From positions 426,882-490,881 of the forward strand of contig NW_005434665.1 in assembly GCF_000315625.1 (NCBI RefSeq): 64,000 nt of DNA, in the 5' to 3' direction. The position numbers and the translations under genes were made by a program. Below are positions 2,904-57,964 of the stretch, piece after piece. Within the stretch, counting starts at the first letter, position 1, and the number at the start of each line of letters is the position of its first letter. Under the pieces are notes generated by a model. It saw nothing but the letters and a program-made list of their open reading frames with translations, was not told the origin of the DNA and ran no database searches. This DNA comes from Guillardia theta CCMP2712 (lineage: Eukaryota > Protista > Cryptophyta).

Positions 2904-4779
2904 ATGGAGCGCAAGACCGAGGACGACAGGAGTGACTCTAGCGATGAGGAGGAGACGGAGGAGTATTCCCAGCTCTGGTGAGAACGCCCGGTGTTCCCGT
3001 AAGTCCCTCATGCTGCCTCCAGGCAGAAAGTGGAGAAAGTGTTCGAGGAATTTCACTTGTCCCCCTTCGCCATGGCGGCAGCGAAGAAGTGGGTGAAGCT
3101 CATGGCAGACCCGAGCAAGACGAACTTGACGCGGATCCGAGACTGGCTACTCCTCAGGATCAACAACAAGCATCGCGCCCCTCCAGCTTCCAGGTGGCAG
3201 AAAGGCTGCCCCGACCTCGTTCCCGGCCTCCGTGCGCTTCCCTTTTGGGATCGAGGCATGCCTGAGATGGGATGGGTGCGAGAGATTGAGGATCACTTCG
3301 AGGACGTGAAAGAGGTCTGCCCTGATCTTTGCTCTCCTGCTCCCCTGCTCCCCTGCTCTCCTGCTCTCCTGCTCTCCTGCTCTCCTGCTCTCCTGCTCTC
3401 CTGCTCTCCTGCCCTCCTGCTCTCCTGCTCTCCTGTTCTTCGTCCTTCTGCTGTGCTTTCGCATCCTCGTCTTGCTCTTGTTTCTGATCTTGAGCGACAA
3501 AGGAGCTGTTGAATCTGAGGGGCAAGAAAGGCTTCCAGCCATTCCGGCAGGTTGACTGAGGCCAGTTGACCCTTTACTTCGCCTCACAATCCCGCAGCCC
3601 AAGTGGAGCACGAAACTCGCGTCGGATGACGTGCGATAGGAGCGATAGACCTTGAGCCCTGTTGACCCACTACCCTCAGGTTGGAGCAGTGAGCCATGAC
3701 AAGGGGGACTGGAATGTTTTCTACCTCTTCCTGCACAACGAGAAGTGATAGCGTCGCTCCTTGCCGCCTTTCCTCCCCATAAGCTGCCCGCTCAGATTCG
3801 AGGAAAACTGTGCAAAATGCCCTAAGACTGTGGAATTGATCGAGAGAATCGCTCCCAGGTGATGCTGTCCCGCTCAAATGCTCTGTGGGAGCCGGCGGTG
3901 AAAGTTTCACGTTGACAGACAGTACAAGCATGCCTTCTTCTCGGCTCTGAACCCTGGGACTCATGTCATAGCTCACACTGGGGTGAGAGCAATCAATTCT
4001 CAAGCTGCCATCTGATGCTTTCACCAGCCGACCAACAAGAAGCTCCGATGTCATCTCCCTGTCACGGGGGTCGAGGGTAGTCGGCTGCGAGTGGCTGATG
4101 AGGTAAGGCTTCACTGTCTTGAAGAAGTTATGATGTTGATGCGATGTTGCACGACAAACAGGTTCGCGAGCAAGAAGAAGGTGTTTGTTACGTCTTTGAC
4201 GACTCGTTCGAGCACGAGGCCTGGTGAGCTCTTCATGGACCACTTCCTTCCTCATCGTTCCACTCCAGGCATGATGGAACCTCAACGAGGATTGTACTCC
4301 ATTCGCTTCCCCTGCTGTCATCGTTTCCATGAAATTGTAATCCATTCAGGTTTTGATCTTCGACGTTTGGCATCCGGACTTCAGGTAAACCCCTCCCCTG
4401 TGATCGAAGTTGGACCTTATGGAGTCCAACAGCGACGAGGAGGTCAAGTTTCTGGGGTACCTGCAGAAGAGTCAGATGAAGTAGGACCCCTTGATGCTCG
4501 CCTGCTGGGCTGTGCCATGTGATTGAGATCTTTTGCTTCCCCACAGGGAGGAGCAGAGGATGAGCGCAGGTCAAGACAGTGAAGACAATTTCTACAGGTG
4601 GAGCATGCAGTGCATACATGTACCCGTGTTCTTGATCGTGCTCGCAGCCTCCTCAGGAAGACAAAAGATCTCCTGGTGGACGACAGGTCGTCGAAGTCCT
4701 CCCCTGCCGCTCCTCCCTCCCGCTGACCCTCTGCAGCTGGTGGATTGCCCCCGATGAAGCATCAGCTCATGGGAGGTGA
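2904..4779 (+). CDS. Aspartyl/asparaginyl beta-hydroxylase family 2OG-Fe(II) dioxygenase, multi-exon
   Basis: Spliced peptides GLRALPFWD, GDWNVFYLF, ENCAKCPKTVELI, PGTHVIAHTG|PTNKKLRCHLP, FDDSFEHEAW|HDG and LIFDVWHPD are the hallmark Asp_Arg_Hydrox motifs. Exact start and last exon are uncertain. Confidence 0.9.
3330..3435. repeat. (CTGCTCTC)n intronic minisatellite
   Basis: Read directly; lies in the intron after ...FEDVKE. Confidence 0.9.
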
Positions 4780-5852
4780 CGGGGAGCGCGCGGCCTTGAG
4801 AGCGTCTGACGCGATGATGTCTCAAGGAGAAAACATCGAGTCTACGTCGGGGGCCTCGGTTGGATGGACGTTAGCACCGCGGGAGGGGGGGGGGTGAGGG
4901 TACTTCCGAAGGTGAGCGTCTCATGCTGAGTTTGTCGTCGATTGATCCTTGGAGGACAGAAGGCAAGGCCCGAGACATCGATCTACGTGAGTGGGTTCGG
5001 TTTTCATAACATTTCAGAATAAAGTCGTTCCGCTCCTAGTGTACACGCAGTGAGCCAACGTATGCGGAGCTGCTAGTCTGCGAGAGGATGGGCATGCTCG
5101 AGCAAGTCATGGCGGGCTCATGTCTACGAGGCGGGCTCATGCCTCGTCTCTTCCATCTTCATAGGCCATGCTATGATGATGATGACTGCTACTCGTGTGA
5201 TGTGTGTGGATACCCTTCCCAGCCGACTGAGCACGCGATCAAGGGCGAAGTAACAAATGAGAGGTATGAGATTACCGCAGCTTCTCCTGCATAGTGAAGA
5301 CGTCTTTGCCTGGCAAAATCTTCCTTTCCTGAACCCAAAGCGTCAGCTGGACAAACACAGGAAGCACTCCATCATACTTTTCCGCTCTTCCTCCTTCGTT
5401 CCTTTCGGCCTCCAGGGCTTCGGTTCAATCATATTCACCGATCGTGTGGACGATGCAGCACCCATGTTTGGTACTTCCGCTTACCTTATCGTACTTGTGT
5501 TTATGTTTCCATATGACTTCCGTCTCGACATTCACGTCGTTTTCCCTCCTCTTCCTTCGATCCGCCCAGTCTCAAGTTTGCTGCTGTTTGCCTGCACCTT
5601 TCGTCAGGACATATTCCCTCCTTGCTGAGTCACGGAACCCCTACAGCTCGTCCCCCTCCCTCCCTCCTCACTTCATGGCTCATTGTTGCGCTCATGTTCC
5701 GATCCTCCTCTGCCTCCGTCTCATCGTTACCTCCTCCTCCATCCCCTTTCTCACTGCCCATTGCGCCCTAACTTTGACAAGCCCTCGTCCCCACTCACCG
5801 CTCTTGATTGAAGCCCTCATCCCCGCTCATTTCCTGCCATCAACTGCCGACG

Positions 5853-8548
5853 ATGGTGAGGCATGCCCCAAGGACGACCGATGAGTCGCTGGCTGAATAT
5901 GGCAGAGGATCAGACTTGACGGCGCTCTCCCTCCCTCCTCCCTCCCCCCTCCTCCGTCCTCCGTCCTCCATCCTCCGTCCTCCGTCCTCCGTCCTCCCTC
6001 CTCCGTGCTCCCTCCCTCCTCCGTCCTCCGTCCTCGGTCTTCCCTCCATCCTCCATCCTCCGTCCTCCTTCCTCCGTCCCTCCGTCCCTCCGTCCTTCCG
6101 TCCTCCGTCCTCCGTCCTCCGTCCTCCGTCCTCCGTCCTCCGTCCTCCCTCCGCCTCTCCCATCTCTCCTCACCTGCCATCACAGCGCGGTCTGACGGTA
6201 CCCTGACTCGATCTTCCAGGAATTCGAAAACTCCAAGTGGCAGATTTTTGCTGAGGGGGTGAGCATGTCGGTACCTCCTCCACTTCCTTCATGAGTGTCT
6301 TCATGCAGGAGAGTAGCTGGAGTGGCTTAGCAAGAGACATCAACGCCAAGGACAAAGTTGCCATCTATGTGGTGAGTGAAGCTATATCTGCTCTTACCTC
6401 CTACCCCTGCTGCACCCCTGCTCTACATTCTCCTGCTGGCGAGTGAAGGAGCGCGCTCTCAGGCATCTTCGGGAACGGGAGAGATCGTCAAGCTTGTCGA
6501 CCAGGGTGACGGAAGTGCTCAGATCGTGCAGAAAATCCCGACAGGAGGGGTCCCGAGCTCCCTGGCGTTCGACGAAGTTGGGTAGAGCATTACCTGTATT
6601 GCGCTGCATGTGAGGGATGGATGGCAGAGCTATCTTCGTGGGAGACATCGCCTTGAAGTGCATTTTGTCCCATCCTCCCGAAGACTCTGAGTTCCAAGTC
6701 AGCGAGGACTGTGCTTCCACTGCTGGACTGAAACGTGAACCAGGTCCTGGTGTCTGATTACGAGGGCCAGCAGTTCTTCGGGCCCAACAGCCTTTGTTTT
6801 GACAGGTCAGTGTCAAGGCACGTCCTGTAGCAGAAGCGCTGCTCAACCTGACTGCAGCAACGGAACGCTCTTCTTCACTGATAGCGGGCCCATGGGGGAC
6901 ACCAGCCTCTCCAACCCCAAGGTGCTGGGACAAGTGCTGTAGCCGCACGCTTATGCTCTTCTCCTCAGGGGAGCGTGTTCTGCGTTAGCTCGGAGGACCA
7001 GCTGCTGAAGCCTCTGGCGGTCAACTGCCTTGCCCACCCCTCCGGTCAGTGTCAGTCTCCGGTCGCGCCGGGCCCTGGACGGCCGGGCCCTGGACGGCGA
7101 CTGACGGGGAGGATGGAGCAGGGATCGCCGTTAGCCCCGACGGAAGCTGCGTCTACGTGGCTGAGACCATGGCGAACAGAATCCTGAGGTGGGGGGGGGG
7201 GAGGGAAGAGATGAGAGAGGGGAGGAAGGAGGAGGAGGAGGTGAGAGACGGGAGGAGGGAGGAGGAGGAGGTGAGAGACGGGAGGAGGGCGAGAGGATCT
7301 AAGTGACGGGATGAGCGGGAAAAACGAAATGGGAACGGGGGGAGGAGGCAGAGAGGAGCTGGTAATGGGAGGGGCGCAGGTTCATCCGAAGGCCGACGGG
7401 GGTCTACATGTGCAGCGTGTTCCACACGTTCAGCGGGGGGTTCGGGCCTACGAGCCTGGCGTGCGACTCGAAGTCGAACCTCTACGTCTGCAGGTGGGCG
7501 TCGTGATGGAGGAGGCAGGAGGGAGCAGGGAGAAGGGAGAAGGAGGGAGAAGGCAGGAGGCAAGAGGCAGGAGGGGTAAAGAGGAGGAGGGAGGGGGCAG
7601 GAGGCAGGAGGGGTAAAGAGGGGGCGGCAGGAGGCAGGAGGCAGGAGGGGTAAAGAGGAGGAGGCAGGAGGCAGGAGGCAGGAGGCAGGAGGGGTAGAGA
7701 GGAGGAGGAGGGGGCAGGAGGAGCTGCTGGTTGCTAGAAACTCTGAGGGAGTGACTGGCAGGTTCGATTGGGCCAGGGCTGTCACTTCAGAGCGAGATTC
7801 GCAGACGGTAGGAAAGAGCCTTCTTGCCCTGCTTATCCTCACCCTCTCTCCCTCCCTCTCCCTCTCCCTCTCCCTCTCCCCCTCTCCCCCTCTCCCTCTC
7901 TCTCCCCCCCCTCCCCCTCCCCCTCCGTCCCTTCCTCCTCTCCCTTCTCCCCCCCTCCCCAGCCTCCTCATACTTCTCTCTCCCACCACTCTCTGCGCCA
8001 CTTTTGTCCTCCTGCGTCTGCTCGTTCTCATCCCGCAAACCCCGCAGGTGGGAAAGATTGCGGTGCTGGATGAAGAAGGAAGTTTAGTGTCCGAGGTGAC
8101 CGAGCTTCTCTTATGNNNNNNNNNNNNNNNNNNNNNNNNNNNNNNNNNNNNNNNNNNNNNNNNNNNNNNNNNNNNNNNNNNNNNNNNNNNNNNNNNNNNN
8201 NNNNNNNNNNNNNNNTCTCCCTTCTCCCTCCACCCTCCCTCCCTCCTCCTCCTCCTCCTCCTCCTCCTCCTCCTCCTCCTCCTCCTCCTCCCCTCTCCCT
8301 CTCAAGTTCAGCTCGCCCTCTCTTCTCTCTCTCTCATCGCGGAAAGAACCGCTGACGGCAGCCTGTCCATCAGCTGAGAACGCCGGGCCCTGAGGTGACA
8401 GGAATCCTCCTAGTGGAAGAGAACGAGAGGTGAAGGAAGCGTTTGCTCCGCATGCTCCACTCGCTGACATGCTGGCGGCAGTGAATTCCTTTACATCACC
8501 GAGCAATCTACAGGCATGATATACCGTGTATCTGTGGAAGACATCTAA
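5853..8548 (+). CDS. SMP-30/gluconolactonase/strictosidine-synthase-like six-bladed beta-propeller protein
   Basis: Spliced: M|EFENSKWQIFAEG|...GGVPSSLAFDE...DYEGQQFFGPNSLCFD|NGTLFFTDSGPMG...GIAVSPDGSCVYVAETMANRILR|...GGFGPTSLACDSKSNLYVC...GKIAVLDEEG|LRTPGPEVTGI...FLYITEQSTGMIYRVSVEDI*. The first coding exon appears to be only ATG. Confidence 0.85.
5928..6153. repeat. (CCTCCGT)n intronic minisatellite
   Basis: Read directly; it generates the spurious RRTEDGG/PPSSVLR ORFs. Confidence 0.9.
7190..7960. repeat. Cluster of intronic purine and pyrimidine tracts ((GGAGGCA)n, (CCCTCT)n) around short propeller exons
   Basis: Read directly. Confidence 0.85.
8116..8215. other. Assembly gap (100 N) within an intron, next to a (CCT)n tract
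   Basis: Run of N. Confidence 1.
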
Positions 8549-8759
8549 ACGCAAACATCTCTCAACTTCTTCCGATCGTCTCGTCTCCCCCTCCTTCGAC
8601 TTTACCTTTTCCACCTTCTTTGCATCAGGGTCTCTACTTTCCCCTTGCATCTAGCCAGCACCATCCTATCTTCACCCGTCTTCACCTTCTTCTACTCCTG
8701 CATCCTTCACCGTCTCAGACTTCACCTCCTCCTCTCAGTCTCCTTCTCCTCCGCATCCT

Positions 8760-11700
8760 TCAATCCTTGACGAAGTACATCCGTCTCAGCAACTTATCCA
8801 TCGCACATCTTATCTCGTCGATGTCATCTTGGAAGAAAGAGTTCAAATCCCTCCCAGCTCCCAGCGAGTCTGCCATGGCGCAAACAAAGATCCCGCAAGA
8901 GCAGCTGTCCTGTTGCATGGGTATCTGCGACCAGCACATGCTCAGAGAGTCTTCCCTGGTCTCTTGAACCACCACCAGCACGTACCTGTTCGTTCCCCAC
9001 GTAGTTCTTCTTCCACAGCTCCCTGCTCCATCCCCGCGCGTCCCACTCGTGCTGAACAAACGCTGCCGCAAAGGCGTCAACTCGGCACTCGCATGCTGGC
9101 ATCCTTGCCTTCCATGACGCTCAGCCACAAGGCAGGAGTCAAGTTCATCGAGTCGTACAACCTGACGAGGTCGCGATCAGTTGCGAGTGAGTGAGGGAGG
9201 GAGTGAGTGAGGGAGGGAGTGAGGCAGTGAGGGAGGGAGGGAGGGAGGGAGTGAGTGAGTGAGTGAGGGAGGGAGGGAGGGAGGGAGGGAGGGAGGGGAG
9301 GGAGGGGGGGGGTTCGTCCCCGAGAGTTCCACCAACCTTATCGTCAGAGCCTCCAGGTCGACCACTATCATGCTCCAGTGCGTCCCTTCCGCTGCCTTCT
9401 TGTCAAACGTCACGTTGACGGGGATGACGACCCGTTGGTAGTGGCTCCACGTTGCAGGATCGAAGCAGCTCCTCAGCTCGCGGTGGATCTCAGTGTCTTT
9501 CTGCCATGATCGGGGCGTCAGCACATGCCATCCCACAGCAACTTGGTCGAGTTCTGCGCGTCTTGTCTCACAACAAGGACACGTTTGCACATCACGACAT
9601 CGAGACGATCGCCTCCCTGTCTCACCTCTCCTGCATTCCTGCCGAGCAGCAACTTGGTGAAGAAGTGCGTCGAAGCGAAGTATGTCCCCCTTCGTCCATC
9701 GCTCGTGGCGCTCGATTCCGGAGCAGCAGCCGTTGCTCCAGGTCTCTTCCCCTCCCGCAAGATCAGCAGCTGTAAGTAAGCATCGATGATCTGGTCCTTC
9801 AACCAGCGGCCAGGCAGCAGTCCCTTCAGGTCCTCCTCTCTCAACTCCACGGTCGTGATCTTGTTCTTCAGTCCCCCCTCCTGCAATGCTGCTACCAGCA
9901 TCCCCCTCGTATACTTCAGGCTCCCCACCCACTCCTGCAGGAACAGACAACTCGAAGAATCACCAGAGTCCCAGTCCATTCCTGCTCCCGCCGTCCAGTC
10001 CCTTCCTACCAACCCCATCCTGTCTATTCCCTCTGCCTCCCTACCCACAGCACCATCCGCATCCAGCAAGTCAGCCGTTCGCTTCCTCCCCTGAGATTCT
10101 TGAGCCCGTCCTGCAGCCTCCTCTTCCTCCTCCTCCTCCTCCTCCTCCTCCTCCTCCTCCTCTCGGTTCTCTCCCTTCTCCTTCGCTCCACCGTACGGGC
10201 AGGTTCGAGCATTGTGCCCCACGTACCCGCACTTGCTGCACCTGTTAAATCTCCTTCCTTCATACTGCTCCTCTTCTAGATCTGCCACTACCTGACTGCG
10301 CCTCTTTCGGATGCGGATCCGAGGTTCGCCAGGACGCGCCCGCGTACGTCGAGCCTGGTACTTGGGGTGGTGGTAGCCTCCTCTGCTGGGCACTGTAACA
10401 TCCTTCATGCTCGGAATGTACCCCAGAAGAGACTCAGGATCCTCCACTGCCTTGATCAGCGACTGACACAACCAGACTTCGTCGTAGAGCTGCTGGACCA
10501 ACTTCCCTCCCCCCCGCTCCCCGCGCTCCTCTCGCATCCGTTGGAACGCCGCAATGGCATGCGAGCAAGGCCTGGTGGTCAGCTGCCAGTGCGTGCAGGA
10601 GCAGAACTTGTCCGACAGGTTGACGTTGAAAGTCTCTGACGAGCCGTCGTCCATGGTGGATCGGATGCGAACTAACTTGGGGCAGGAAGCACTCCCGACC
10701 ACCTGCAGCCTGGGATAGATCCTCTCGTTCTCCCTGTACTCCTTGGCAATGTCGTCTGAGACGAAGATCGCCTCCTCCCCCGCCTCCATCTTGAGCAGGA
10801 TGTTGGAGTACAGCTCATGGATCCTCTGCAGCGAGCTCATCCAAACCTCCGCCATTGCCTGGAAGAAGTTGAGGGGGTGCGAGGTCTTGCCCATGGCGGC
10901 CCGGAGTCTCGGGTCCTGTCGCTCAGTGAAATGAATCTTTCGGATCCCATACGTCCTCACAGCCTTGATGGTGACCGAGCTCCCTTCCTCGTCTGTCACT
11001 GGGACCTTGGCCAACGCGTACGTGGCCTGGAAGCAGCCGTCCCGGTCAGACTTGTCACAGTACCGGGGGAGAGGAGGAAGAGGAGGAAGAGGAGGAAGAG
11101 GAGGAAGAGGAGGAGGTGGTGGTGGTGGTGGTGGTGCTGGAGGAGGAGGAGGGTCAGGACGTGGACAAGGACGTGGACAAGGAAGGGGAGAGGATTCGGA
11201 GCAGCGTACCCAATGGATGGGAGCTATGCTCTGGATGTACTTCACGGCACTACCGTTCTGCTGTGCGAGCAGGTCGAGAGCATCTTGAAAGTCCTTGACA
11301 GTCCTCGCGGCCTGCCGGGCCTCAACTGTCAGCCCAAGGAGCGGCCGGCAGCAGTATATCCACCTGAGCCCTTAGGACGAGCGCCTCCTGGGACGTGATG
11401 CCCGATTGGAGCAGCGGCTCCTTGCAGTCTACTCCAACAAACGCTTCACACTTCCCACACCACCCTCCTCACTCGGTTCACCTTCACAGTGCCTCCGCAA
11501 GCTGGACAGAAGATGGCGCCCGCAGTACACGACGTCAGCATGCGGCAGCGACTTCTCGACCCCTTCTAGAATGCCAGAGCCCCTGTCGGTCAGGATTGTC
11601 AGGCTCCCCGAGCTAGGGGCCAGCCAAGGGCCCAGCGTCGATCGTTTCAACTCCTCCCACATGAAGCACGCGTTCTCCGTGGTGCCGCCTTCTACAATCT

Positions 11701-56714: not shown

Positions 56715-57150
56715 ATAGGGTAGGTGGGAAACGGGTTCCATGAGGGGGTACAGAACACACTTGGACGGTACCAGGTTTGAAGGTACCCCCAGCAATCACC
56801 GGTTGTTCATTGTTTGATTGTCCACCCTACCCACTATTTTTACATCATTGAAAGGGATAAGGACCCCTGTATTTCCGTGTGAAACCTGTACCCTACCCTG
56901 TGGCTTTCTGTCGAGGGGTCGTACATGCCTCTTGGTCGAAAGGAGGGAGGTTGAAGAGGCACGTCTCTTCGACTAATGGGAGGGGTGGGGTAGGCTGGAA
57001 GGCTAAGACAGTAGCTCAGAAGGAAGGGTTGGGTTATTACATTGGAGAGGATATTGATAAAAGTGAAGGTAGTGCTGTGTATGAGAATCATCATCCCACG
57101 GTGTCTTTTTTTTCAAGCAAGTGGGTGGGGTAGTGGCAGAGGGTATGTAA
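56715..57150 (+). promoter_or_regulatory. GGGT-rich block upstream of the 56-aa gene
   Basis: GGGGTGGGGTAGG, GTGGGTGGGGTAG; followed by a short non-coding exon (donor GTGAGA at 57187). Confidence 0.5.
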
Positions 57151-57308
57151 AGGGCCAGGGGACCACTCCGCAGCACACCAGAGACGGTGAGAGCAGCTGC
57201 CATGGATCTTGATAGCTTCTTCCTCCCCTTTGTCTCGCGCTTCCCCTCCCTCCTTGTGAAGATGAATGATATATGATGTCTTTGTATCGTTCTGACTGAT
57301 GCATCCAG

Positions 57309-57479
57309 ATGATCTGCAAGCTCTTTGACCTCGAGGACTACGCCGGTACCTACCGCGAGACCCGCAACGCCTACCTCAAGGCCGCCAACCAGCTCAAGCT
57401 CGCCACTGGCCCCTACAAGGCTGCCCGCGATGCCTACGTCGCTGCCACCGCCACCTACACCAAGTCCCTCTACGAGTAA
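57309..57479 (+). CDS. 56-aa Ala/Tyr-rich helical protein, candidate cryptophyte ejectisome ribbon protein (ejectisin/Tri type)
   Basis: MICKLFDLEDYAGTYRETRNAYLKAANQLKLATGPYKAARDAYVAATATYTKSLYE*. Extreme C/G-ending codon bias; ATG directly after a CTGAC...CAG acceptor; Tyr/Leu heptad. The family call is from memory only. Confidence 0.75.
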   Translation: MICKLFDLEDYAGTYRETRNAYLKAANQLKLATGPYKAARDAYVAATATYTKSLYE

Positions 57480-57964
57480 ATTATCCGCTTGGGCATCCAG
57501 TGAAGCTTCCAGTGCAGTCGGAACACCCAGCAAGGGACTCGCAGCCAGCTCGGCTAAGTCTGGATGAGTTCATTCATGCCAAGAGGTGCCTTGCTCATCC
57601 GAGCATCGAGGAGTCGAGATCTCAATTACGCTCCTTCAGATCCCTCCAAACTTCAGATTGTGACACCAAATAGTGATACTTGTCAGTCTCTCAAATGCCT
57701 TTGCTTGATACTGTCATTCTTTCAACTGCCGTTGCTGGCACGTATTTGACCGACCGAAAAATACTCACAAGAACAACGGTGTATGGTTCCTTGCACAAAA
57801 GATGCCTTGTTCGGACGGGCACTCACCGCAGTGCTTGTCTAGCAAATCATTCATTTCCAATGTCTTCTCGGAGAACCAAGGGAGTTTAGCAAGTGAAATT
57901 GTTAAAGTTTGGGTTCAAATTGAAAGAAGCGTGGAGATGTACTTGCTCATAAAGGTGTCGCATT

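Follow-up and report, generated by a model that had tools for sequence, protein, structure and literature searches.

Which protein is encoded by the short open reading frame at 57309-57479 of the window, that is, of the whole 64,000-nucleotide stretch of Guillardia theta CCMP2712 DNA under analysis (scaffold C9:426882-490881), and is this protein a subunit of the ejectisome ribbon? A reading of the sequence alone had described a complete, unannotated frame with almost only C/G-ending codons, and had proposed its product as a candidate Tri/ejectisin subunit of the ejectisome. The frame is indeed complete from ATG to TAA and specifies 56 amino acids (computed values, 6318 Da and pI 8.8). Of the 56 codons, 50 have C (40) or G (10) at the third position, giving a GC3 of 0.89 as compared with 53% GC in the window. 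The coding region and the frame opposite to it are as follows:

57309 to 57479, forward strand: tri3-2 coding sequence, type A isoform, single exon of 56 codons plus TAA, defined by the open reading frame, homology and paralogues
57003 to 57533, reverse strand: antisense open reading frame of 176 amino acids, produced by the C/G-ending codons of the forward strand and not a gene

The gene is not unannotated, as the public model GUITHDRAFT_102091 (XP_005839169.1, 74 amino acids) covers it.

The window product is identical at 55 of 56 positions (BLASTP, E 2e-39) to AEH05926.1 (UniRef100_H9LQ53, P0175), the GenBank record of which is named "trichocyst-like protein 3-2 [Pyrenomonas helgolandii]", and the two sequences fall in or beside one 90%-identity cluster. 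According to PMC3982174, tri1, tri2, tri3-1 and tri3-2 are the genes for the major proteins of the coiled ribbon in P. helgolandii ejectisomes (work cited there as Yamagishi, Kai and Kawai, 2012), G. theta has four tri3-2 genes, and tri3-2 is present in Goniomonas and in the katablepharid Roombia. The proposed resemblance to Tri subunits is thus borne out by comparison of the sequences, and the role as a ribbon protein is taken from PMC3982174. Because of this identity and of what PMC3982174 says about tri3-2, the locus is a copy of a known gene rather than a novel one. It very probably belongs to the nuclear tri3-2 copies, which number at least 21, and encodes a 6.3-kDa, Tyr/Ala-rich protein published as a major constituent of the ribbon. 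Residence of the G. theta protein itself in the ribbon is presumed by analogy with the P. helgolandii literature, as represented in PMC3982174; no proteomic data were found for G. theta.

The name tri3-2 surfaced when large 90%-identity clusters were opened. Word-based protein searches gave about 400 relatives, all of which are cryptophyte or metagenomic, and no named relative is found among the best 120 rows of two such searches. Members of the family occur in Guillardia, Hanusia, Baffinella, Pyrenomonas/Rhodomonas, Proteomonas, Cryptomonas paramecium and Roombia, and in Hanusia, Proteomonas, Cryptomonas paramecium, Rhodomonas and Baffinella some are transcript-derived. The member from the katablepharid Roombia truncata (JP448850.1) agrees with PMC3982174. 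The window protein shares with Tri3-2 a high identity over the whole length, a size of about 56 amino acids, the lack of a signal peptide and occurrence in ejectisome-bearing cryptists. General resources are silent: a Pfam scan of the window protein and 19 relatives gave only sub-threshold noise, a PDB sequence search with the window protein gave nothing meaningful, and an ESM Atlas search with it gave no usable match. Neither two short peptide motifs of the protein nor the name "trichocyst-like protein" retrieved any paper in a full-text literature search. The 90% clusters of P0042, P0095, P0101 and P0046 also include unrelated bacterial proteins, such as a 600-residue ABC transporter and a 951-residue xylanase, and several JGI members of the family bear the label "ABC-type transporter lipoprotein component MlaA". 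These long bacterial cluster members and MlaA labels look like artefacts of clustering and annotation.

A six-frame search of the G. theta genome (87.1 Mb, 669 contigs) yields at least 21 intact copies of 56 codons and five weaker matches, namely divergent exons and one broken copy. This count disagrees with the four genes given in PMC3982174. The intact copies fall into two isoforms. Type A (MI[CQ]KLF...), to which the window gene belongs, has five copies, three on C9 and one each on C45 and C55, while type B (MF[AS]LLF...ATTYRATRD...ANE...) has sixteen, some of them in head-to-head pairs on C56 and C30. Type B, which is found in G. theta, Baffinella and Proteomonas, has the same length as type A and is identical to it at 49 of 56 residues (87%); the differences lie at residues 2-4, 13, 17, 20 and 28, whereas residues 29-56 are identical. 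Over the family, invariance sets in at F6, before which residues 1-5 differ both among isoforms and among genera. Since both isoforms are conserved across genera, they are old and probably neither redundant nor interchangeable. Baffinella copies of both isoforms are named "trichocyst-like protein 3-2", and assignment of type B to Tri2 or Tri3-1 is ruled out by this naming of its Baffinella copy together with its 87% identity to type A.

Within type B, two copies differ by up to 13 synonymous codons versus at most one non-synonymous codon. The coding sequences of different copies are 92-100% identical, while their 200-nt flanks are about 50% identical, the level of shuffled controls, so that similarity ends at the borders of the coding sequence. 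The window coding sequence is the same, base for base, as that of the copy at C9:266804-266971, and the introns and 200-nt flanks of these two copies again show about 50% identity, the level of shuffled controls. The excess of synonymous changes and the restriction of identity to the coding sequence point to a very strong constraint on the protein; as judged from this comparison of copies, tri3-2 is under very strong purifying selection. The coding sequences, and seemingly these only, may also have been homogenised between copies. Diverged Tri3-2-like exons (for example ...ARDQYLKAANEVKMDTGPFKAAKDAYVAA...), some of them apparently interrupted by introns, are located at C395:6868-6984, C77:324251-324364, C203:29426-29509 and C101:43530-43616, and a broken tri3-2 copy with an in-frame TAG lies at C12:330232-330315. 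By these matches, the Tri3-2 family of G. theta extends beyond the 21 intact copies.

Upstream of the window coding sequence, the following elements are placed:

56978 to 56993, forward strand: another copy of the G-rich motif below (GGAGGGGTGGGGTAGG), from the same motif comparison
57121 to 57133, forward strand: G-rich upstream motif (GTGGGTGGGGTAG); G-rich words are enriched upstream of the paralogues
57144 to 57151, forward strand: TATA-like box (TATGTAAA), with the splice donor about 36 nt further on; paralogues have TATAAAA or TATATA in the corresponding position
57152 to 57186, forward strand: region with a short non-coding first exon, located after the TATA-like box and before the donor, without a frame-opening ATG
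57187 to 57308, forward strand: putative 5'-UTR intron, GT...AG, 122 nt, ending directly at the ATG, deduced from the sequence and the paralogues
57202 to 57255, forward strand: N-terminal extension of GUITHDRAFT_102091 (MDLDSFFLPFVSRFPSLL), starting at the ATG at 57202 and lying inside the intron

The intron had already been proposed by the sequence-only reading, and its position in the paralogues supports it. In the window sequence its borders are a GT donor at 57187-57188 and an AG acceptor at 57307-57308. Most paralogues likewise have a TATA-like box followed at about 30-45 nt by a GT donor, and then an intron that cannot be aligned and whose AG lies 0-3 nt from the ATG; identity among the paralogue introns is no higher than in shuffled controls. 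Six paralogues are intronless, and their TATA box lies about 35-45 nt before the ATG. A transcript-derived peptide of Hanusia phi (P0004) reads a stretch similar to exon 1 of the window gene (KGQ...TRDG) and reaches the ATG after 9 codons, versus about 40 in the unspliced window sequence, a layout consistent with splicing at the window intron. The window gene has no in-frame coding exon upstream of the 56-residue frame. A signal peptide encoded by exon 1 is ruled out, as this exon has no ATG and, because of the spacing of TATA box, donor and ATG across the paralogues, no room for one. The 74-residue public model consists of the 56 residues plus 18 residues read from the intron. This extension is shared by no paralogue or orthologue compared, and since it lies inside the intron it is probably spurious. 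N-terminal extensions in other predicted proteins of the family all differ from one another.

The words GGGGTAG, GGTAGG and GGGTGGG occur in 9-14 of 20 upstream regions of the paralogues as compared with 0-1 of the downstream regions. Another motif, CCGGAAATAGA, is found upstream of 8-9 tri3-2 copies; it is absent upstream of the window copy, and the sole site in the window (with one mismatch) lies on the opposite strand at a distance of 10 kb. CCGGAAATAGA followed by a TATA-like box within 10-40 nt gives 13 overlapping matches in the genome (about 11 distinct sites), compared with none for the reversed control. Four of these sites (six matches) are upstream of tri3-2 copies, and the others are at C27:156340, C31:212827, C80:359346, C81:33175, C95:183047, C170:9565 and C203:30242. 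These seven sites away from tri3-2 may mark other co-regulated genes, perhaps of the ejectisome.

The protein has the Tyr/Leu heptad that was noticed from the sequence, exactly at Y15, Y22, L29, Y36, Y43 and Y50. The register also takes in M1 and L8 and stays in phase across G34-P35, and five of the seven Tyr residues share a single residue class modulo 7 (permutation p ~0.002). The heptad position "d" is formed by K4, Y11, T18, A25, A32, A39, A46 and S53, including small residues, mostly Ala. As for the 21-residue internal duplication claimed together with the heptad, a repeat is present, although it is weak: in the cited stretch 5 of 11 residues agree, and over the full offset 5 of 21. From an alignment of 19 sequences, AlphaFold predicts helices at residues 8-33 and 37-55 and a break at T33-G34-P35, with moderate confidence for the monomer (mean pLDDT 71.5, pTM 0.36); the helical hairpin suggested earlier fits these two predicted helices broken at Gly-Pro. 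A Foldseek search of the model against the PDB gave no match at E <= 0.001. In the assembly that we propose, the two helices would pack via the ladder of Tyr/Leu at the "a" positions and the stripe of small residues, mostly Ala, at the "d" positions, and many such hairpins would polymerise side by side into a tape. The tape would be stored wound up under strain and would unroll at discharge, and the high copy number and the C-ending codons might serve bulk synthesis.

Could the frame be open by chance, as part of a non-coding repeat or a mobile-element remnant? It is multi-copy, with head-to-head pairs on C56 and C30, and the antisense frame is also open, as might be expected of such an element. 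However, similarity between the copies stops exactly at the borders of the coding sequence, substitutions are nearly all synonymous in the forward frame, and the 56-residue product is present in the transcriptomes of several genera; a non-coding origin is refuted by these observations, and its probability is negligible. The antisense frame is ruled out as a gene by the substitution pattern of the paralogues, which fits the forward frame. For a protein-coding family, residence in another cryptophyte structure such as the periplast might be considered, the family being an abundant small structural protein there and its presence in trichocysts a contamination. Tri3-2 has no signal peptide, which is in keeping with this and counts against a place in the ribbon, since ribbons form inside a vesicle. 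On the other hand, the named GenBank record stems from ribbon protein work, as cited in PMC3982174, and the family also occurs in Roombia, an ejectisome-bearing katablepharid, so that residence elsewhere is very improbable as compared with a role of Tri3-2 in the ejectisome ribbon.

A ribbon role of Tri3-2 raises the question of whether the ribbon is a true homologue of the bacterial R-body, acquired by gene transfer, with Tri3-2 as a very diverged member of the RebB family. Both the ejectisome ribbon and the R-body are coiled, insoluble ribbons made of small subunits, and the four cryptomonad trichocyst proteins are similar to Reb proteins according to PMC3583457 (citing Yamagishi et al., 2012). 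For Tri3-2, however, the kinship with R-bodies implied by the sequence-only reading finds no detectable RebB similarity in Pfam, BLASTP or hhalign. The PF11747 profile matches neither the window protein (E <= 10) nor 19 family members (E <= 1), BLASTP aligns nothing to RebB of Caedibacter (plasmid pKAP298) at E <= 100, and hhalign of the Tri3-2 family against RebA/B/D gives a probability of 0.05% and an E of 0.8, with a shallow Reb profile of three sequences. The composition is also unlike, RebB being rich in Gln, Thr and Ser and lacking the Tyr heptad. Genome searches with PF11747 and Caedibacter RebB gave no candidates, and the known tri genes equally escaped them; as PF11747 and RebB detected no tri gene, these searches are uninformative about tri genes. 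Because of the shallow Reb profile and the silence of the genome searches, similarity between Tri3-2 and RebB is, at the level of sequence, not detected rather than disproved. Membership of Tri3-2 in the RebB family is considered unlikely, and Tri3-2 is not filed there; by analogy, the Tri3-2 ribbon may still work in an R-body-like mode.

Outside the window, homologues of Tri3-2 are encoded by metagenome contigs of 23-68 kb that are compact, intronless and about 39% in GC, and are giant-virus-like. They encode a dUTPase, a protein kinase, a synaptobrevin/longin protein, an Arf/Ras GTPase, a UL92-like protein and a tyrosinase; in the parts covered, no hallmark gene for capsid or polymerase is seen. 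The carriers are L022:10001-10366 (ENA ERZ6864591 c_000000573708), L034:10001-10378 and L036:10001-10366. The gene order, 1178 amino acids, 217, (371), Tri3-2-like, (178), 582-584, UL92-like, kinase, synaptobrevin, tyrosinase, is largely common to L022, L036 and a third contig, and the neighbours differ in L034. The Tri3-2-like proteins on these contigs have 121-136 residues and consist of a signal peptide, a Tri3-2 core, and RRRL with a conserved tail. The canonical signal peptide ends just before F6, and the 51-residue core is 100% identical in protein to type B Tri3-2. Compared with one G. theta copy, the core differs by 19 synonymous codons and by no non-synonymous one, and its GC3 is 0.78 within a contig of 39% GC. 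As a host-like GC3 is thus kept in a low-GC contig, the sequence suggests that the core was captured from a cryptist host.

On L027 (IMGVR_UViG_3300032084_000921, 32% GC), three adjacent open reading frames on the same strand at 4489-8764, of 1164, 107 and 144 amino acids, carry end motifs of Tri3-2 (LFDLEDYATTYR... and ...YTKSLYE) flanking unrelated inserts. In the 107-residue product a Cys-rich insert lies between MLFDLEDYATTYR and SSYTKSLYE, that of 144 residues has MLLFDLEDY and an internal ATRDAFFKALNQ stretch, and that of 1164 residues has a C-terminal TYTKSLYE; eight open reading frames of this contig gave no matches in PHROGs and Pfam. L025:45-656 and L026:371-874 encode proteins of about 170-200 residues with an MKK-type signal peptide, a near-identical first half of Tri3-2 and a second, diverged Tri3-2-like domain. 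Both lie on short contigs in AT-rich DNA (GC3 0.25), and one neighbour has a VWA domain. It is conceivable, if rather doubtful, that the Tri3-2 core is a portable self-assembly module captured by cryptist viruses and, as a separate matter, that Tri3-2 is a cryptist invention unrelated to RebB. If so, the viruses might build ribbon-like structures of their own, or might load proteins into the host ejectisome ribbon or interfere with it, and with an origin of Tri3-2 apart from RebB the ribbon would combine components that differ in origin.

Because the locus re-discovers a published ribbon gene, nothing changes in the field. What is gained is a corrected model of GUITHDRAFT_102091 with 56 instead of 74 amino acids, a tri3-2 copy number in G. 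theta of at least 21 as compared with the four reported, two isoforms that cross genera, and shared promoter motifs that might aid in finding other ejectisome genes. The absence of detectable RebB similarity in Tri3-2 bears on the view that ejectisomes came from R-bodies. The viral homologues with signal peptides, which lie outside the window, are the sole part that might surprise a specialist.

Ejectisins are polypeptides of about 6 kDa, and the window protein comes near this mass both at full length (6318 Da) and from F6 on (5729 Da). The title of Ammermann et al. (2013, Protoplasma 250:551; cited in PMC9184458) presents ejectisins as "tiny polypeptides" and a major component of ejectisomes, and it is by mass and by this title that they are compared with Tri3-2 here. 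The closest known system is Tri3-2 of P. helgolandii (AEH05926.1), which likewise has 56 amino acids, is of type A and is devoid of a signal peptide, the single difference being C3 versus A3; the window copy is set apart by its putative 5'-UTR intron and a mis-started public model, and AEH05926.1 comes from another genus. RebA, RebB and RebD of Caedibacter taeniospiralis are, like Tri3-2, small subunits of an insoluble coiled ribbon that can unroll, but unlike Tri3-2 they have 81-114 amino acids, are rich in Gln and Thr and are devoid of the Tyr heptad.
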